This document shows positions 8,736 through 31,717 of a stretch of 64,000 bases of DNA, piece by piece. The DNA is from Obrimoposthia wandeli. Its lineage: Eukaryota. Under the pieces are notes generated by a model, which saw nothing but the letters and a program-made list of their open reading frames with translations, was not told the origin of the DNA and did not search any database. Position 1 is the stretch's first letter; each line of letters starts with the position of its first letter. A program made the position numbers and the translations under genes. Location: the NCBI GenBank assembly GCA_977020255.1, contig CDROCS010000253.1:1922001-1986000 (forward strand). Direction: 5' to 3'.

Positions 8736-10628
8736 TTAACTAATAAAGCGCTTTATTTTACTAACAATACCTTCGGCGTCTAAACCTAATTCATGATGTA
8801 CTTCTTCTTGAGTACCATGTTTAACAAAATGGTCTGCAACACCAATATTTAAGATACAAACGGGTTTACCTTGAGCAAGTAGATATTCGTTTACGGCTGA
8901 GCCTGCGCCACCAGCTATGGCATTATCTTCAATCGTTACCAAACAGTCATGCTTGGCATTTAATGCATCAATAAGTGTTTCATCCAGCGGTTTAACAAAG
9001 CGCATATCTACTAGTGTTGCATTAAGCTCTAAAGCCGCTTTTTTTGCTTCACCTAACATAGAGCCAAAACTTAATATGGCGATGCTATTGCCTGTTTGTT
9101 CTTTGTTTTCTAAGTCTTCTGCATTAAGGATGGTTACACCTTTACCTAATTCAATGGTTTCATCAACACCAGGTAGAATTTCTCCTGTGCCGTTACCGCG
9201 AGGGTAGCGGACAACGCTAGGGCCATTTAATTTAAAACCAGTGTTTAACATTAACTGGCATTCTCGTTCATTAGACGGCGCCATAATTACAGTATTAGGA
9301 ATACAGCGTAAAAAGCTTAAATCGAAAACTCCCTGATGAGTCGCACCATCAGCACCTACTATGCCAGCACGGTCAACAGCAAACATTACCGGTAAGTTTT
9401 GTATAGCGACATCGTGAATGAATTGATCGTAACCACGTTGTAAAAAACTAGAGTAAATGGCGACGACTGGTTTTAGACCACCAATTGCAAGGCCTGCAGC
9501 ATACGTTACTGAATGTTGTTCAGCAATCGCTACATCATAGTATTGGTCTGGGAAACGCTGGCTAAACTCAACCATACCAGAGCCTTCAGCCATAGCAGGA
9601 GTAACCGCAACTAACTTTTTATCAACTTCAGCTGTTTTACACAACCAATCGCCAAAAATTTTCGAATAAGTAGGTAAGCTCGGTTTTGACTGAGGTAAGT
9701 TCGTTTCTTCAGGATTAAACTTTGGTACTGCGTGATATTTTATCGGGTCTTGCTCTGCGGCATGATAGCCCTTACCTTTCGTGGTAACTACATGTAAAAA
9801 TTGTGGTCCTTTCAGGCTACGCATGTTTTTAATTGTTGTGACTAAGCTTTCGACGTCGTGACCATCAATAGGACCAATATAGTTAAACCCTAGCTCTTCA
9901 AAAAAAGTACTGGGTACAACCATGCCTTTTAAATGTTCTTCAGCGCGGCTAGCAAGTTCTTTTATTGGCGGGATATTGCCTAATAATTTTTTGCTGCCTT
10001 CTCGAAAACCAGTAAAAATACTACCTGATAGTAATTTAGCTAAATGGTTGTTTAATGCGCCCACATTTTTTGAAATTGACATATCATTATCATTTAAGAT
10101 GACTAACATATCTTTTTTGATATCACCCGCGTGGTTCAATGCTTCAAAAGCCATACCTGCGGTCATAGCGCCATCGCCAATAACGGCGACCGTTTTACGA
10201 TTTTTTGCTTCTTTTTCAGCGGCTACAGCTAAACCTAAAGCGGCAGAAATTGAGGTACTTGAATGGCCTACGCTTAAGGTATCGTATTCGCTTTCTTCAC
10301 GCCAAGGGAAAGGGTGCAAACCTCCTTTTTGCCTTATAGTGTGAAGTTGCTCACGACGACCTGTTAAAATTTTATGCGGATAAGCCTGATGACCCACATC
10401 CCAAATCAAGTGGTCAAAGGGGGTGTTGTAAACATAATGCAAGGCTACGGTAAGCTCAATTGTGCCAAGGCCTGATGCAAAGTGTCCACTACTTTGACTT
10501 ACTGAATTAAGTAAAAAACTACGCAACTCATTACTAATACGTGTCAGTTGTTCCTGCGGCATATTGCGCAGATCTTCTGGAATATCAATCTGAGAAAGTA
10601 GTGGGTAGTCAGCAAGATTTGTAGTCAT
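8736..10628 (-). CDS. dxs: 1-deoxy-D-xylulose-5-phosphate synthase
   Basis: [44 protein letters not shown]. Likely ATG at 10628. Confidence 0.98.
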
Positions 10629-10682
10629 AGTTTGTCTATCGGTAATAATCATTTTATTTAAAGTTTTACTCACTCTACACGC

Positions 10683-11585
10683 TTAGTGGCTGCGTTTAAT
10701 AATAAAAGTGGCAAAATCTGCTAAAGATTGGGTATTGTAAGGTAATCTAGTCAAAGCTTGAAGCGCTTGTTGTAATAAGTTTTGTGCTTTGTCTTGTGCG
10801 CCTTGCAAACCGAGTAGTGCAGGATAAGTACTTTTGTTAGCTGCTAAGTCTGATCCGACGGGTTTACCCAACTCTTCTTCGGTTGACGTTAAATCAATAA
10901 TATCATCTTGTACTTGGTAGGCCAGGCCAATAAGCTGTGCGTATTCGCTTAATATTTTTTGGTGTTCATTGGTGACTTGCTCGCTACACATGGCAGGCAT
11001 TAATACCGATGCTTCTAATAAAGCGCCCGTTTTAAGGGAATGTAACACTTCCAATTCACTGAGTGGAATGTTTTTACCTGTTGCTGCTAAATCCAGCGCT
11101 TGTCCGCCACACATGCCTTGGTAACCAGAAGCGCTAACTAATTGTTGAATTAGCTTAACTTGGATAGGCATTTTAGCAGGGCTTAGATTCGTTGAAAACG
11201 TATGGTTAGCTAAAATATCAAAAGCTAACGTTTGTAAGGCATCACCCGCTAATATTGCCGTTGCTTCATCAAAAGCTTTATGGCAGGTAGGCTTACCGCG
11301 TCTTAAATCATCATCATCCATCGCAGGTAAATCATCATGTAAAAGCGAGTAAGCATGAATACATTCTAGTGCGCCGGCTACCGCGTCAATATCGTTCAAA
11401 TCAGCTGAGATTGCTTCGCCTGTAATATAAGCTAAGTAAGGTCGCATACGCTTTCCGCCAATAAGCAACCCATAACGCATGGCTTCAAGAAGTTTAGTAT
11501 CATTGATGGGAATGCTTTCAAGCTTAGCGGCTAAAAAATCATTAATACGTTGTTGATACTGCTCATAGGACGTCAATATTATCAT
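10683..11585 (-). CDS. ispA: Farnesyl diphosphate synthase
   Basis: GGKRMRP, HAYSLLHDDLPAMDDDDLRRGKPT, HSLKTGAL, YQVQDD. Confidence 0.97.
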   Translation of the reverse strand: MIILTSYEQYQQRINDFLAAKLESIPINDTKLLEAMRYGLLIGGKRMRPYLAYITGEAISADLNDIDAVAGALECIHAYSLLHDDLPAMDDDDLRRGKPTCHKAFDEATAILAGDALQTLAFDILANHTFSTNLSPAKMPIQVKLIQQLVSASGYQGMCGGQALDLAATGKNIPLSELEVLHSLKTGALLEASVLMPAMCSEQVTNEHQKILSEYAQLIGLAYQVQDDIIDLTSTEEELGKPVGSDLAANKSTYPALLGLQGAQDKAQNLLQQALQALTRLPYNTQSLADFATFIIKRSH

Positions 11586-25670: not shown

Positions 25671-26378
25671 TTAGTGATGATTTTTAAAAATACTCGGTAC
25701 CAAGTCTACTTCTCTACAAAGGCCATTAAAATCAGGTACCGTAATACAAGCACCTGATTCAGTAATGAGGCCACTGAATTTCAATTTTTTAAATAATCGA
25801 GATAATGTTTCTGGTGTAATGCCTAACTGTGAGGCCAATACTTTCTTGGTATTTGGCAGGGTAAATCGATTACCACTTCTTTTTTGTTTGCTATAAATAT
25901 CAGCGAAATGCATAACCAACCGTTGATTTGCATTAACTTGTGTGAGCATATCTAACGAATTCATTAATTGGCCTACACGGTTACTGATAAAGCTGATCAC
26001 CTGCAATGATAGTTCAGGGTTGCTAACAAATAATTCTTTAAAGCTTTCGTAGCTATAAGCAGTTAGTGTTGTTTCTTGATCTATGTGGGCACTCATAGGG
26101 TACTCTCTTGGCTGCATAAAAACGGCCATTTCAGCAATAACTCCGCCAGACATAAACACTTTAAATATTTTTTTCTCGCCATTAGGCATTAATCGAGACA
26201 GGGTTACTTTGCCTTTATTCACGCGGTAAATATGGTCTGCGCTATCGCCTCTTTCAAATAAATAATCATTACTATTCAAATTTATTTGATGACTTTTAGA
26301 TTCTAGAGTATTGCGCTGAGACCGCGAAAGTAACTGCAGTATTGAAGCTTCAGTTGAACAAAAATGTGTACTAGGCAT
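25671..26378 (-). CDS. Crp/Fnr-family regulator, Dnr/NssR/HcpR-like
   Basis: cNMP-like domain (YLFERGD, GKVTL, GGVIAE), C-terminal HTH LASQLGITPETLSRLFKKL with E..SR recognition residues. No FNR N-terminal Cys cluster. Start 26378 or 26399. Confidence 0.9.
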   Translation of the reverse strand: MPSTHFCSTEASILQLLSRSQRNTLESKSHQINLNSNDYLFERGDSADHIYRVNKGKVTLSRLMPNGEKKIFKVFMSGGVIAEMAVFMQPREYPMSAHIDQETTLTAYSYESFKELFVSNPELSLQVISFISNRVGQLMNSLDMLTQVNANQRLVMHFADIYSKQKRSGNRFTLPNTKKVLASQLGITPETLSRLFKKLKFSGLITESGACITVPDFNGLCREVDLVPSIFKNHH

Positions 26379-26410
26379 AATATTTCCGTATGTAGGCATA
26401 AGCGATGACC

Positions 26411-26424
26411 TTGATAATTGTCAA
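26411..26424. promoter_or_regulatory. FNR/Dnr-type binding site
   Basis: TTGAT-aatt-GTCAA (9/10 to TTGAT-N4-ATCAA), flanked by CC and GG. Centre 26417.5. Confidence 0.85.
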
Positions 26425-26446
26425 GGGGCTAATGAAGTAATCACCG

Positions 26447-26452
26447 TATAAT
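26447..26452 (+). promoter_or_regulatory. -10 element of a class II Crp/Fnr-activated promoter for the ABC/TBDR operon
   Basis: Perfect TATAAT. A predicted +1 at 26459 puts the FNR box at exactly -41.5. Confidence 0.8.
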
Positions 26453-26469
26453 AAATGAAAATCATTCTC
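26451..26469. promoter_or_regulatory. Fur-box-like operator
   Basis: ATAAATGAAAATCATTCTC, 14/19 to GATAATGATAATCATTATC. Overlaps the -10 end and predicted +1. Confidence 0.7.
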
Positions 26470-26483
26470 ATTTATAGGTTGCT

Positions 26484-27494
26484 ATGAAGTATTTTTCATC
26501 CTGTGTATCGCTATTTTTATTACTCAGTTTTTTGTTATTAAGTCCTAAAGCTAATGCGGGCGACAGTTCCCCTAATAATGAGAGACGTTTTACACTGGCA
26601 GGTCCAGGTGCTGTGGTCAGTTATCCCTTAATGGTGATGGCACAAAAAAGCATGTTGTCGCAGCAGCATATTGCACTTGAGTTTGTGCAATGGAAAAATC
26701 CTCAACAGCTGAGAGCCATGGTTATGGGGGGACAGGTGGATTTCACTGCGATGCCATCAAACCTTGCAGCAACGTTTTATAATCGCGGACACCAACTGAG
26801 TTTAGTCAATATTTCTATTTGGGATATCATGAGTATTGTCAGTCAAAAAGGTCATCGTCTTACTGATATACAGGATCTAGTTGGCCAAGAAATAGCGGTG
26901 CCTTTTAAAAATGACATGCCAAGTATCGTATTAAAGGAGTTACTGAATGCTAACCTGGCGGAAAAGGCGAGCGAGGTTACGATTAGAAATAGCCATAACC
27001 TCGCTGATGCCGCTCAGTTATTATTGGCTAACAAAGTTAAGCATGCCTTATTAATTGAACCGCTAAGCTCAGTAGTTTTATATCAAGCGAATAAAAAAAA
27101 TGCTCAAAAGCAGGGCGTTAATCTCGTCACCTCATTAAATATTAGTCAACTTTGGCAGAGTAGCTTTCCAAATAGCCCTAAATTACCACAAGCAGGTATC
27201 GTCGCTAACATTACCGTCAATCAAGACCGTAAAGTAGTGAGTCAAGTGAATCAAGCATATAAAGCTGCGGCTAGCTGGTGTCAGGATAATGTCGTTCAAT
27301 GCGCTGATATCGTAAGAGTCTATCTGCCTAAAATGCCACGAAAGGCACTAATTTCAGCAATAGAAAAAACAGCAATAACGACAGTGGATGCTAAGTCAGC
27401 TAAAAAGGATTTAGAAAGCTTTTATCGTCTGCTTGCTAAAAGTGATGCGAAGCGCATTGGTAATAAATTACCAGCAGAAGGTTTTTATTTCTAA
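26484..27494 (+). CDS. ABC transporter periplasmic binding protein (NitT/TauT/SsuA-like fold)
   Basis: Signal peptide (..KANA), AGP start of the mature domain, G.VDF..MP.N, DL.GQEIAVP, LLIEP. Followed by permease and ATPase genes. Confidence 0.85.
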   Translation: MKYFSSCVSLFLLLSFLLLSPKANAGDSSPNNERRFTLAGPGAVVSYPLMVMAQKSMLSQQHIALEFVQWKNPQQLRAMVMGGQVDFTAMPSNLAATFYNRGHQLSLVNISIWDIMSIVSQKGHRLTDIQDLVGQEIAVPFKNDMPSIVLKELLNANLAEKASEVTIRNSHNLADAAQLLLANKVKHALLIEPLSSVVLYQANKKNAQKQGVNLVTSLNISQLWQSSFPNSPKLPQAGIVANITVNQDRKVVSQVNQAYKAAASWCQDNVVQCADIVRVYLPKMPRKALISAIEKTAITTVDAKSAKKDLESFYRLLAKSDAKRIGNKLPAEGFYF

Positions 27495-28276
27495 TGGCTT
27501 TATTTAACGATAAAAACCAGTTAATTATAAAAAAATTATTTATCCAGCTTGCTGGCGTTTTAGCGCTTATTGCTTTTTGGCAATACCTTGCCAATCAATT
27601 AAGCAACATGATTTTAGCTTCGCCCAGTCAAACTTTTTCACGTTTGGCTGAGCTGATGTTAGACGCTGAGTTTTGGCAAACATTACAGGTTAGTCTTACT
27701 CGGTTAACTATCGCGCTCAGTGCTGCTTGTTTTATTGGTTTTTCTCTTGGTGTTATTGCGGGGAGAAAAACGTGGGTAAGAGATTTTATCGCGCCAACCC
27801 GCTGGCTACTGATGAGTGTCCCACCCGTCATTGTCGTACTGTTGGCAATGCTGTGGTTTGGTATGGGATCTTCTATGGTGATTTTCATTACGGTAATTTT
27901 ACTTACCCCAACCGTTTATATAAATACTCAAAAGAACATCGCCCAAATTGATCCGCAGTGGCTTGAACTGTCGAAAATATACCAATTTTCATATTACCAA
28001 TGTCTTTGTAAAATTTATATTCCTGCCATTGCACCAGCTTTATGCGCCACGTTAGTCATTGTTTGTTGCAGTGGTGTGCGAATTGTTGTTCTCGCGGAAG
28101 TATTAGGAAGTCATGAGGGCATAGGTTATCAGCTAACAAATGCCAGCAGTAACTTTGAAACGGCAGAGTTATACGCCTGGGTCTTGGTGAGTTTATTACT
28201 TGTTGCTTTGTTAGAGCTGCTGTTACTTAAGCCGATTCAAAATAAGCTGTTACGTTGGCAGGGAGAAAATTCGTGA
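27494..28276 (+). CDS. ABC transporter permease (NitT/TauT type)
   Basis: About 6 TM helices, ILASP, SVPPV...LAMLWFG, YIPA..P, AEVLG...GIGY motifs. Confidence 0.9.
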   Translation: MALFNDKNQLIIKKLFIQLAGVLALIAFWQYLANQLSNMILASPSQTFSRLAELMLDAEFWQTLQVSLTRLTIALSAACFIGFSLGVIAGRKTWVRDFIAPTRWLLMSVPPVIVVLLAMLWFGMGSSMVIFITVILLTPTVYINTQKNIAQIDPQWLELSKIYQFSYYQCLCKIYIPAIAPALCATLVIVCCSGVRIVVLAEVLGSHEGIGYQLTNASSNFETAELYAWVLVSLLLVALLELLLLKPIQNKLLRWQGENS

Positions 28277-28995
28277 TTGTAGCTAATACAAATGCCGTTG
28301 AACGTAATTCACTTTCGCCCATAGTTTCAATGGAAAATGTCACGTTATATTTTAATCAGCAGGCTATTTTTGATGATCTTTGTTTAGACATTTATGCAGG
28401 AGATAAAATTGCTTTACTCGGCAGAAGTGGTGTTGGCAAGTCATCGCTTATGAAGTTGATTGCTGGTCTTGAGCAAGACACGAACGGCTTAATTGTCAAC
28501 AGAGCACTACGTATTGGTTATGTATTCCAAGAGCCAAGATTATTACCTTGGCTTGACGTTGCCCAAAATATAATTGAAGTAATGAAAGCACGAGGCGTTC
28601 CGAAAAATCAACGGGAATCACGCCTTGATGAACTTTTAAATAAGGTTGGCTTAACGGGATACAAACATTATTTCCCGCACCAATTATCAGGAGGCATGGC
28701 ACAACGAGCTTCGTTAGCGAGGGCTTTCTCTACTGAACCCGATCTATTGTTACTCGATGAGCCGTTTAGTGCGTTAGATAAACACGCTACCGATGAATTA
28801 AGTTGTTTATTACAACAATTTTTGACCGAAAAAACTAGCATGCTTTATATCAGTCACGATATAGAGCAAGTCCTTAAAGTCACGACTAAATGCCTATTGT
28901 TGAGGCCTTCAAAACCCCCTTTGCCCTGTAATACAGCTACACCACAAGATCGCGATTTATTTATGAATCATATTTATCCATCAGAGGTTAACTAA
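28273..28995 (+). CDS. ABC transporter ATP-binding protein (NitT/TauT type)
   Basis: Walker A GRSGVGKS, VFQEPRLLPW, signature LSGGMAQR, Walker B LLLLDEPF, H-loop SHD. Likely GTG 28273 overlapping the permease TGA. Confidence 0.92.
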   Translation: MIVANTNAVERNSLSPIVSMENVTLYFNQQAIFDDLCLDIYAGDKIALLGRSGVGKSSLMKLIAGLEQDTNGLIVNRALRIGYVFQEPRLLPWLDVAQNIIEVMKARGVPKNQRESRLDELLNKVGLTGYKHYFPHQLSGGMAQRASLARAFSTEPDLLLLDEPFSALDKHATDELSCLLQQFLTEKTSMLYISHDIEQVLKVTTKCLLLRPSKPPLPCNTATPQDRDLFMNHIYPSEVN

Positions 28996-28997
28996 TT

Positions 28998-29438
28998 ATG
29001 TCCTATGCCGTTTTAATCACCATTCATTTGTTTGCAGCCGTTATGTTTATTGGTGTTGTTTTTTTTGAAGTTATTTTTCTTGAGTCAATAAGGAAGCGAA
29101 TAGCGAGTGAGATCATGGCACAAGTACAAGAAGGGATCACCACTAAAGCGCGAAAAATTATGCCGTATGTACTTGGCTTTTTATTTCTGTCGGGCCTAGC
29201 GATGGCTAATCATCACTTTCCCGGTTTTCAAAATATGATGTCGTCAAATTTCGGCCAACTGTTATCAGTAAAAATGCTCTTAGCATTTAGTGTGCTGATG
29301 CACTTCTTCACCGCTATGTATCTTTCCCGACAGGGAAAAATGAGCTGTAGTCGTTTTAAATTTATTCATTTAAGTGTTTTCTGCCATCAAGTGTTGATCA
29401 TCTTCTTAGCAAAAAATATGTTTTATATCACTTGGTAG
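28998..29438 (+). CDS. Uncharacterised ~4-TM membrane protein (CopD-like/COG3399-like)
   Basis: 146 aa, hydrophobic helices with membrane His residues (TIHLFA, LMHFF, FIHLSVFCHQ), RKIMP motif. Confidence 0.72.
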   Translation: MSYAVLITIHLFAAVMFIGVVFFEVIFLESIRKRIASEIMAQVQEGITTKARKIMPYVLGFLFLSGLAMANHHFPGFQNMMSSNFGQLLSVKMLLAFSVLMHFFTAMYLSRQGKMSCSRFKFIHLSVFCHQVLIIFLAKNMFYITW

Positions 29439-29452
29439 TTTAAGGAAATAAT

Positions 29453-31612
29453 ATGCAATATCACCGAAAAAAAATGGCTTCTCATCAAAAGTCAGCTTTA
29501 AAAAAAAGTTATCTCATTTTATGTATTGGTACTGCGATTATGGCTGCACCGACATTTGCCGATGAAGCTTCATCATCAATGACTATTGATGATCACATTG
29601 AAATAAATAGTCAGCGGACAGAGCGAGCTTTTCCTACATTGGAGGAAGCCCGTAGTGAATTGAAAAAAGTAGCGGGTGGCACCAACTTAATTGAAATTGC
29701 CAAATTACCAGCAAGACAAGCAACATTGCAAGATGCGCTGGGTTTTGAGCCAGGCATCATTATGCAAAGCTTTTTTGGCGGTAATGATCAACCTAGGCTT
29801 AATGTTCGTGGTTCAGGTATGCAAAGTAATCCTGTTAATCGCGGGGTACAGTTACTTTATGATGGTTTACCAATTAACCAAGCCGATGGCAGCTTTATTA
29901 TTGGCTTTCTTGATGTTAAATCAGCAGAAATGGTATCGGTATATCGAGGAGCTAATGCTCAGCGTTATGGTGGCACAACCTTAGGTGGAGCGGTTAATTT
30001 ACATAGTAAAAATGGTACTAATGTTAGCCCGAGTGTAAGAGTTGAATATGGTACTGATGATCGCGTAGGGCTGAGCGGGCAAGTGGCGGGGCAACATGAC
30101 GATTGGGATTACTATCTTAATGCGAGCCATGATAGTTATGACGGTTATAGAAACCATAGTACCTCCGAACGTAATAATATTTCTGCGAATGTCGGAATAG
30201 ATATTAGTGAAACCATTACCAACAGAACGTACTTTCAGTGGAGTGATAATCAATTTGATATTCCATTTGTGGTACCCAAAGACCGAGCTATTAACGTCCC
30301 AGAGCAAGTATTAGGGGACGGTAATACACCGCTAGATAAATTGTTAAACGTATACGATAGAGAGCCATACCGTGACTCTTCCTTGTTAAGGGTTGCCAAT
30401 AAAACGCGATTGAGTTTTGACAATTTACAGCAAGAATTTGGTATCTTCTATCAAGACTTATCAGATACTTTTACCGACCCATTAAAGCACAATGTAACTG
30501 AAAGTCAGGATGTCGGCTTTGAATACGCTGCTAGCTTAACAGGAGATTATATCAGTGAATATGATGAATTCTCCTTATCAGTCAGTGGTAATTTAAGTGA
30601 TATGAACCGACGTTACTTTGCTAACAGTCCTATAAATGGCAGTCAGTTGCAAAAATTTGGTGATGTAGATTTTGCAGCAAGTAATTTTATTTTAGCCTTA
30701 CAATGGCAAGCTCAACTGTCACAAAATATTCAGCTAGTGGCTGCTGCGCAGGGAGTTAACGCTAACCGAGATATTAGTGATAATAAAGGCACGGGGTTAA
30801 ATCAAGATAATAGCTACAATAGTATTAATCCTAAGCTGGGTGTTAATTATCAGTTTTCCGAGGATATTCGATTTTTTGCCAACTTAAGTGCCACGAATGA
30901 AGCGCCGACTTATTGGGAACTTGTGTCTGCCTCAGTCAGTCCAAAAAATCCTGCTATGGCCAAGGTAAGTTTGAATAACTTAGAGGCTCAGTCCTCCAAT
31001 ACCATAGAGTTTGGCTCTAGTGGCAGTATCGGTCAAACACAGTGGAATATTGCACTATATCGAAGTGATATTGATGATGAATTAATTTCTATTGTCAGTG
31101 ATTTTGCTGTTAATGGAAAAACTGACAATTATAATGCAGGCACTATTCATCAGGGAATAGAGTTAGAGTGGCTACAAGGTCTTAGTGAGGGGTTGATTAC
31201 CTCGGGAGATCATTTGTCGAGTAAGTTAGTTTATAATTACTCCGATTTTTATTTTTCTGGTGGTGAGTATGAAGGTAATCAAATTGCCGGTGTGCCAGAG
31301 CATTTAATGCAATTTGAATTACGTTACCAAACAGCGAGTGGTTTATATATTGCGCCAAGCATTAAGTGGCAAATTGACGATGCAGCGATTGATCATGCTA
31401 ATAGTCAATATCAAGATGCTCATCTATTAGTTGGCTTACAAATGGCTTATCAAGTGAATAAAGATTTACGTGTTTATCTCGATGGACAAAACCTGACTGA
31501 TGAAAACTACCAAACGTCTTATGTAATACGTGGTTATTCAAATCCGAAACAACCCAGTTATTTACCAGGTTTTGGCCCAAGCGTCAGTTTAGGTATTAAT
31601 TATAACTTTTAG
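29453..31612 (+). CDS. TonB-dependent outer-membrane receptor, substrate unknown
   Basis: Signal peptide, plug motifs (RLNVRGSG, YDGLP, VSVYRGANA..YG..LGGAVN), NL.DE.Y, C-terminal GINYNF. Confidence 0.93.
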   Translation: MQYHRKKMASHQKSALKKSYLILCIGTAIMAAPTFADEASSSMTIDDHIEINSQRTERAFPTLEEARSELKKVAGGTNLIEIAKLPARQATLQDALGFEPGIIMQSFFGGNDQPRLNVRGSGMQSNPVNRGVQLLYDGLPINQADGSFIIGFLDVKSAEMVSVYRGANAQRYGGTTLGGAVNLHSKNGTNVSPSVRVEYGTDDRVGLSGQVAGQHDDWDYYLNASHDSYDGYRNHSTSERNNISANVGIDISETITNRTYFQWSDNQFDIPFVVPKDRAINVPEQVLGDGNTPLDKLLNVYDREPYRDSSLLRVANKTRLSFDNLQQEFGIFYQDLSDTFTDPLKHNVTESQDVGFEYAASLTGDYISEYDEFSLSVSGNLSDMNRRYFANSPINGSQLQKFGDVDFAASNFILALQWQAQLSQNIQLVAAAQGVNANRDISDNKGTGLNQDNSYNSINPKLGVNYQFSEDIRFFANLSATNEAPTYWELVSASVSPKNPAMAKVSLNNLEAQSSNTIEFGSSGSIGQTQWNIALYRSDIDDELISIVSDFAVNGKTDNYNAGTIHQGIELEWLQGLSEGLITSGDHLSSKLVYNYSDFYFSGGEYEGNQIAGVPEHLMQFELRYQTASGLYIAPSIKWQIDDAAIDHANSQYQDAHLLVGLQMAYQVNKDLRVYLDGQNLTDENYQTSYVIRGYSNPKQPSYLPGFGPSVSLGINYNF

Positions 31613-31632
31613 CCTTTTCTAATATTAAGTGG

Positions 31633-31669
31633 TATAAAGCGAGTCGTTAATCTAACGGCTCGCTTTATA
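31633..31669. terminator. Terminator between the TBDR and peptidase genes
   Basis: TATAAAGCGAGTCGTTA-atc-TAACGGCTCGCTTTATA. Confidence 0.75.
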
Positions 31670-31717
31670 AATTAGTCACTATTAAGTAGTCAATATTAAG
31701 TCGTCATGGTATTGATA

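Follow-up and report, generated by a model that had tools for sequence, protein, structure and literature searches.

A probable DNR- and Fur-type controlled operon pairing a TonB-dependent receptor with a NitT/TauT-type importer, possibly for an iron-related solute, in a Colwellia-like chromosome

Related systems and the locus

NirS, Nor and cytochromes make denitrifying bacteria heavy users of iron, nitric oxide (NO) attacks iron centres, and little is known of how these bacteria obtain iron in such a setting. We analysed a stretch of 64,000 nucleotides (the window; positions 1,922,001 to 1,986,000 of contig CDROCS010000253.1, assembly GCA_977020255.1) and within it a cluster of six genes: a Crp/Fnr-family regulator and, divergent from it, a five-gene operon for a solute-binding protein (SBP), a permease and an ATPase of an ATP-binding cassette (ABC) importer of the NitT/TauT type, a 146-amino-acid (146-aa) inner-membrane protein and a TonB-dependent outer-membrane receptor. 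A conserved uptake operon controlled by Fur and by an NO-type activator would solve the iron supply of denitrifiers in a dedicated way. The ABC family of this operon is not one associated with metal-chelate import, and its sister operons place NnrS, which belongs to the core of NO regulons, in a transport context.

Several described systems come close to this locus. The DNR/NnrR regulons (nir, nor, nos, nnrS) share with it a regulator of the same Crp/Fnr subfamily, without the Fe-S cysteine cluster and with the E--SR helix, as well as a TTGAT-N4-ATCAA-like box and a denitrifying host, but here a transport operon is the target, and the published regulon reconstruction (PMC1274295) does not include it. 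According to the same work, nnrS belongs to the core of the NsrR, NorR, DNR and NnrR regulons, tehB-like genes join NsrR regulons, and NnrS is a haem-copper protein (PMC1274295). The Fur-repressed TonB/ABC systems for iron chelates and haem (Pseudomonas phu/hxu and FpvGHJK-FpvCDEF) also place a receptor, an SBP and an ABC importer behind a Fur-like box. They differ in that the ABC module here is of the NitT/TauT type (type I permease, NMT1 SBP) and not FecCD/BtuCD, that a CopD/HemJ-like protein or NnrS serves as the accessory protein, and that the promoter includes an activator box of the FNR/DNR type. FpvG and FoxB are reductases, and the 146-aa membrane protein could play a like role. In P. 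aeruginosa, the hxuIRA haem-uptake genes carry a Fur box at hxuI and respond to DNR and NO (PMC8768829), and they are the nearest regulatory precedent for uptake controlled by both Fur and DNR/NO.

The closest solved relatives of the receptor and the SBP are PqqU (YncD), by sequence, and PqqT, by fold and behind 3hn0, respectively. However, the receptor scores far under the PqqU cut-off and does not keep its plug contacts, the SBP is 17% identical to PqqT, and P. aeruginosa pqqU is without iron regulation. Operons with NnrS have the same slot, SBP family, promoter logic and kind of host, although NnrS has no profile homology to the 146-aa protein. The latter is like the CopD, HemJ, DUF4149 and DUF2214 proteins in size, in its four long helices and in a conserved His of helix 1, whereas its own set of H10, H102, H124, H130, E24 and E29 marks a distinct small family. 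In the literature that we searched on NnrS with TonB/ABC or Fur, DNR with TonB receptors, PqqT, PqqU and Sao proteins, neither this unit nor an NnrS-linked ABC/TonB operon is described. The original prediction had singled out as unusual that a TonB receptor is paired with a NitT/TauT-type ABC; this combination was likewise not found described and is indeed unusual. Taken as a TonB/ABC uptake system for a metal nutrient, the operon is unusual in three ways, namely its NitT-type ABC module, its CopD-like or NnrS partner, and its dual DNR-Fur promoter.

Conservation of the unit, its promoter and its regulator

Species genomes were scanned with an SBP alignment, which gave 80 loci, and these were then subjected to open reading frame (ORF) calling, BLAST and clustering. 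Two architectures were found. In Architecture A, that of the window, the regulator gene is divergent from the SBP, permease, ATPase, 146-aa protein and receptor genes, in this order; it is kept in Colwellia, Litorilituus, Achromobacter, Alcaligenes, Diaphorobacter and Acidovorax, with 30-50% identity for each protein. Conservation of the cluster as a unit, for which a search of co-encoding genomes had been proposed, is thus borne out in Gamma- and Betaproteobacteria, and the presence of the whole six-gene unit across these two proteobacterial classes rules out chance adjacency. In the betaproteobacterial loci of this architecture, a DUF1971 (YeaR/TehB-N-like) protein adjoins the regulator. Architecture B has the order (receptor)-SBP-permease-ATPase-NnrS, usually with a TonB receptor and often adjoining a Crp/Fnr gene, and was present at 32 loci in Pseudomonas, Halopseudomonas, Thiopseudomonas, Ottowia, Castellaniella, Lautropia, Sulfurovum and Campylobacter. 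In all 32 of these sister loci, NnrS (PF05940) fills the operon slot of the 146-aa protein.

The SBPs of the two architectures have much in common, as 47 positions of the window SBP are conserved in both (N24 excluded), including W70, Q74, Q75, R77, N100, W113, E136, F141, D144, D175, E192, W224, Q236 and W265. This sharing of residues suggests one and the same ligand class for the SBPs of A and B.

Some loci depart from these two orders or carry further genes. A Psychromonadaceae locus (L009:10354-13265) has the regulator, SBP, permease, ATPase and receptor, lacks the 146-aa protein, and has a SAM (S-adenosylmethionine)-methyltransferase gene overlapping the end of the receptor gene. In Pseudomonas sister loci (L037:12677-16905, also L049), genes for Slam, a lipoprotein with an HphA_C domain and a further TonB receptor lie beyond the DNR-like gene. 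Another contig of the assembly from which the window comes (C2119:149584-160599; L002 is its first part) carries a solitary SBP paralogue of 33% identity, flanked by a flavodoxin gene and a gene for an Rrf2-family (NsrR/IscR-like) regulator, with a COX3-like gene near and nnrS about 8 kb downstream.

Conservation extends to the promoter. The FNR/DNR-type box TTGATaattGTCAA agrees with the consensus at 9 of 10 positions, and its position at -41.5 relative to the predicted transcription start would be a class II arrangement; for DNR, the published consensus is CTTGATnnnnATCAAG (PMC1274295). In nearly all related loci this box is kept approximately 70-75 bp upstream of the SBP gene. A Fur-like box follows directly downstream, and the tandem is found with the operon in different taxa, irrespective of gene order. 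The Fur-like box scores 14/19 in the window, 16/19 at L010 and L068 and 15/19 in Alcaligenes at 57% GC; in receptor-first loci, where the tandem is found upstream of the receptor gene, the scores are 17/19 (L038, 68% GC), 16/19 (L050) and 15/19 (L078), and Campylobacter locus L074 has the same arrangement. Genomes with equivalent boxes include those of 57-71% G+C, and at 46 of the 80 loci the box is in the top 5% of windows from its own locus. An NsrR site was also considered for this second conserved box; on visual comparison the published NsrR consensus fits poorly and Fur far better, with up to 17/19 positions. It is very probable, in our judgement, that these genes constitute a conserved uptake operon controlled through a DNR box and a Fur box, and we infer that a DNR-type factor and Fur regulate it in vivo. 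A search for RNA runs covering the stretch returned none.

The regulator contains the cNMP_binding (PF00027, 6e-16) and HTH_Crp_2 (PF13545, 2e-13) domains of Pfam. Its best solved relative is DNR of P. aeruginosa (3dkw; E = 4e-21, 79 bits, full length), ahead of FNR (3e-13, 53 bits), the N-terminal Cys cluster is missing, with C14 the single Cys in the first 200 residues, and the ETLSR recognition helix is kept. These features agree with the Dnr-type assignment of the original prediction, and DNR was also the best match among solved structures for two further regulators, one from an A locus of Achromobacter and one from a B locus of Pseudomonas (3/3 tested). The protein is approximately 30% identical to its Achromobacter counterparts; since its homologues are 235 aa long, versus 242 aa for the ORF call, translation probably starts at Met8.

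The contig is a 4.68-Mb Colwellia-like chromosome within a 1.35-Gb mixed assembly of many contigs. Its genes include nirS with nirF/N-like paralogues, nosZ and pqqC, as well as two copies of nnrS that stand alone, and from this gene content the host is a NirS-type denitrifier. One of the stand-alone nnrS genes is located about 7 kb from pqqC (C253:1715993-1724906; L086 covers part). A search of this chromosome for Crp/Fnr paralogues returned one weak match of 25% identity, leaving the window regulator as the only DNR-type one found, and for this reason it may be the general denitrification regulator of the host rather than a dedicated one. The region upstream of nirS (C253:161505-161856; L083:4505-4856) has two FNR/DNR-type boxes, GTGATtcagATCAA and TTGATcaagGTCAA, which are TTGAT-N4-GTCAA-like and would fit control of nirS by the window regulator.

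Because the window's own assembly is mixed, relatives were sampled around the genome of Colwellia psychrerythraea ND2E. The SBP was present in 9 of 55 Colwellia species genomes, and nirS was found in 8 of these 9 versus 21 of the 46 SBP-negative ones (Fisher one-sided p = 0.019, uncorrected for phylogeny). The sole SBP-positive genome without nirS is a fragmented one, and the co-occurrence with nirS that had been put forward as a check is therefore present in Colwellia. At the family level, just 1 of 101 sampled genomes had the SBP, which makes the unit an accessory one.

Candidate cargo and mechanism

None of the six cluster proteins reaches an NCBIfam equivalog cut-off, and therefore none is placed in a characterised subfamily. 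The traits of a NitT/TauT importer are all present (an NMT1-type SBP, a single BPD_transp_1 permease and a TauB/SsuB-like ATPase), but the scores are low: 39.8 bits for the SBP with SsuA_fam (cut-off 163.5) and 143.6 bits for the ATPase with its best match, the taurine ATPase TauB (cut-off 357), while the best permease matches, SaoP, SsuC and TauC, are each far under cut-off. As judged from these profiles, the ABC system belongs within the NitT/TauT family and in none of its characterised subfamilies.

The 146-aa protein had been labelled His-rich, which overstates its six His residues (4%), four of them conserved. In the family alignment the conserved residues are H10, E24, E29, R52, H102, H124, H130, K139 and W146. 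Its feature neighbours are CopD, DUF4149, UPF0093/HemJ and DUF2214, and it scores 20.8 bits with Pfam CopD (PF05425), below the gathering threshold of 32.1, so that the resemblance to CopD would be at the superfamily level only. The predicted model shows four long helices (predicted local distance difference test, pLDDT, 84). A PDB fold search with it gave no significant match; the neighbours, with weak E-values and template modelling (TM) scores of 0.5-0.65, were HemJ, the cytochrome b556 FdoI, SirB2/YchQ and the CopD part of CutJ, and the model would fit a membrane module that binds haem b or a metal. Homology to NnrS, which is approximately 370-430 aa long, was considered and rejected (hhalign probability 0.3%). 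Among the loci examined, the family is confined to this operon, apart from a second copy that some Achromobacter loci carry next to the unit. These second copies follow the receptor gene (L012:13208-13651, L015:13168-13611, L019:13163-13606, L020:13151-13594 and L024:12609-13052) or lie a few kb upstream of the unit (L025:4387-4830, L026:767-1210 and L069:726-1169).

We propose the following mechanism. A DNR-type activator, sensing NO or anoxia, would bind the FNR-type box at -41.5, and Fur would occupy the box over the core promoter and block it while iron is sufficient. Since the two boxes are combined in one promoter, the five-gene operon would fire only when the cell is denitrifying or exposed to NO and is also short of iron. 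The TonB-dependent receptor would then move a scarce solute across the outer membrane, the SBP with its NMT1/PqqT fold would capture it in the periplasm, and the NitT/TauT-type permease and ATPase would import it to the cytoplasm. The 146-aa protein, or NnrS in the sister operons, may be a haem- or metal-binding partner with a redox or handling function, for example in reducing or releasing the metal of a chelate or in shielding the metal from NO. The likeliest cargo would be a small iron-bearing or iron-delivering chelate that resembles a siderophore or haem and would cover the large Fe requirement of NirS-type denitrification. That the six genes are one unit that takes up an iron-related chelate when NO or anoxia coincides with iron limitation, with the 146-aa protein or NnrS as partner, we consider an evenly balanced proposition, and we would likewise give an iron-related cargo an even chance. 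More tentatively, and with the balance of probability against it, NnrS and the 146-aa protein might be interchangeable membrane partners of an unrecognised NitT-type importer, which together with the TonB receptor would form a DNR/Fur-gated, denitrification-specific acquisition system for iron, haem or iron chelates. If true, NnrS gains a concrete metal-handling role at a transporter. Culturable and genetically workable strains of Achromobacter and Alcaligenes exist.

The link to NO and denitrification is consistent with the original prediction, as the neighbours across loci include NnrS and DUF1971/YeaR-like proteins, in sister operons among others, and nirS co-occurs with the SBP. Iron-type neighbours are also present, in the form of FecR with an STN-type receptor and of the Slam, HphA-like lipoprotein and receptor genes noted above, and the flavodoxin and Rrf2 genes beside the SBP paralogue on the other contig were counted as support for uptake of an iron-related chelate. 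As for the substrate, the idea of an iron-related compound used in anaerobic life or under NO holds in so far as the Fur-like box is conserved. Its suggested examples haem d1 and sirohaem do not hold up: we rejected both as unlikely cargoes since Achromobacter and Alcaligenes, which we take to be NirK-type (copper nitrite reductase) denitrifiers, have the unit too.

Several observations weigh against an iron-related cargo. The residues shared by the A and B SBPs are aromatic or acidic (W70, W113, W224, W265, E136, D144, D175, E192), and to our knowledge SBPs of the NMT1/NitT type are not known as binders of iron chelates or haem. The FRAP/NPNL motif pair of haem receptors was not found in the window receptor, which has NPKL only, and this receptor scores 66.6 bits with the haem/haemoglobin model TIGR01785 (cut-off 316.85). 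Many B-locus receptors do score best with the haem/haemoglobin receptor model, at 255 bits against a cut-off of about 317, and some have the motifs YRSP...NPKL. However, three receptor clades (siderophore/PqqU-like, haem-like and copper-like) serve the sister operons, which singles out no one cargo. The Fur-like box of the window, with only 14/19 matches, is unexceptional in AT-rich Colwellia loci (background fraction 0.1-0.4). CopD-like proteins and NnrS are also linked to copper, and cupredoxin (plastocyanin/azurin family) genes that adjoin the unit in a Colwellia metagenome-assembled genome (MAG; L005:13308-13748) and in a proteobacterial MAG (L036:9675-10451 and 10469-10915) are a hint of copper or electron transfer that does not fit with iron.

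These cupredoxin genes suggest a rival reading, the acquisition of copper or a copper chelate for the denitrification enzymes NosZ, NirK and haem-Cu NnrS, in which the CopD-like protein would handle copper at the inner membrane. Besides the resemblance of the 146-aa protein to CopD, including the fold match to CutJ, and the description of NnrS as a haem-copper protein (PMC1274295), it has in its favour the sister receptors of Campylobacter, Lonepinella and Cardiobacteriaceae, which at five loci match best the TonB-copper model (164-201 bits). We nevertheless regard copper as unlikely, given that the window receptor has no match to that model, that the CopD score is under the Pfam threshold, that the conserved box matches Fur and not a copper regulator, and that the neighbouring iron-type modules point to iron. 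An ordinary NitT/TauT importer of an organic sulphur or nitrogen compound or a vitamin precursor (a sulfonate, taurine or the thiamine pyrimidine), equipped with its own receptor, is suggested by the family-level matches to SsuA, SsuC and TauB and by the further SBP fold matches, which were SsuA, TauA, ThiY and a thiamin-bound binding protein. Every one of those scores is far under its equivalog cut-off, though, no desulfonating or thiamine gene was found in any of the 80 loci examined, and the explanation would account neither for the conserved boxes of DNR and Fur type nor for the linkage to NnrS; it seems to us very unlikely.

Salvage of pyrroloquinoline quinone (PQQ), or of a related anionic aromatic cofactor, through a PqqU-like receptor and a PqqT-like SBP would make sense of the DNR control, because the last biosynthetic step (PqqC) needs O2 and PQQ synthesis therefore fails under anoxia. 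The host chromosome does have pqqC, along with a protein of approximately 600 aa with PQQ repeats that is possibly a PQQ dehydrogenase. Among solved structures, the receptor has sequence relatives in PqqU/YncD only (E = 1e-25), and the predicted SBP model (pLDDT 88.7) has PqqT with PQQ (9b1u) as its second-best fold match (TM 0.69-0.78 at 17% identity, in a fold comparison of the model), after 3hn0, of which the ligand is unknown. PqqT contacts PQQ through K142/N143 (PMC11331073), along with a stacking Tyr, and the window SBP has K142-N143 after strand 6, in agreement by residue name and number, the two proteins being unaligned. PqqT was absent from the PDB sequence-search matches even at E = 10, and the comparison was therefore one of folds. 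In the SBP family, however, these two residues are not conserved (position 142 is Q or R and 143 varies), and the conserved polar residues are acidic, a poor fit to a tricarboxylate. The PQQ contacts of PqqU include Q84, Y99 and Q121 (PMC12124388) and the barrel arginines R304 and R365. Our comparison covered the plug residues Q84, Y99 and Q121, which align to D112, P127 and I149 of the receptor and are thus not kept. With a score of 115 bits against the NCBIfam PqqU cut-off of 1200, in addition to these unkept contacts, the receptor is ruled out as a PqqU orthologue. There is also a Fur-like box here, whereas pqqU of P. aeruginosa is iron-unresponsive, and we know of no PQQ enzymes in Campylobacter and Sulfurovum, which are hosts of sister operons. 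Altogether, PQQ or a cofactor of its kind appears quite unlikely as the cargo.

Gene layout and neighbouring genes

The five tightly coupled genes and the divergent Crp/Fnr regulator were recovered as ORFs at the positions originally given, with their domains confirmed by Pfam and NCBIfam (Table 1). The SBP, permease and ATPase genes overlap, and are followed by gaps of 2 bp and 14 bp; the region between the regulator gene and the operon is 84 bp long. The predicted terminator closing the operon was missed by a simple terminator scan and revealed by folding, as a hairpin 3' of the receptor gene with a 17-bp core (-25.8 kcal/mol, z = -6.9, none of 200 shuffles as stable). The surroundings are indeed of the housekeeping kind, with metH, hpf, a dipeptidyl peptidase IV (DPP-IV) gene and radA flanking the cluster, as identified with Pfam and NCBIfam.

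Table 1. Genes and predicted signals of the cluster, in window coordinates
Feature	Position	Strand	Remarks
Regulator gene, DNR-type Crp/Fnr	25671..26399	-	242 aa as called; probable start Met8 at 26378
FNR/DNR-type box TTGATaattGTCAA	26411..26424	+	centre 41.5 bp upstream of predicted transcription start
Predicted -10 hexamer TATAAT	26447..26452	+	read from sequence; inferred position
Fur-like box over -10/+1 region	26451..26469	+	14/19 matches to GATAATGATAATCATTATC
SBP gene, NMT1/THI5-like, signal peptide	26484..27494	+	Pfam NMT1
ABC permease gene, NitT/TauT type	27494..28276	+	BPD_transp_1
ABC ATPase gene	28255..28995	+	ABC_tran; TTG start within permease gene overlap; alternative ATG 28330
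Gene for 146-aa four-helix inner-membrane protein, CopD/HemJ-like superfamily	28998..29438	+	
TonB-dependent outer-membrane receptor gene, YncD/PqqU-related clade	29453..31612	+	Plug and barrel
Strong stem-loop between convergent receptor and DPP-IV genes	31628..31680	undirected	probable bidirectional terminator

In Colwellia psychrerythraea ND2E (L003:3374-7106), an extra receptor of the CarboxypepD_reg type and a 455-aa protein without a Pfam domain are encoded between hpf and the regulator gene. Both extra genes are absent from the window, and this chromosomal spot is therefore variable.

A molybdopterin oxidoreductase gene is present as two ORFs near the unit in two unrelated taxa (L074:1518-4989 in Campylobacter, 177 and 772 aa; L017:2010-6017). 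The split ORFs adjoin a gene for an Fe-S subunit, in the manner of formate dehydrogenases. The split may reflect an in-frame stop that is read as selenocysteine, and the proximity of these genes to the unit is probably coincidental.

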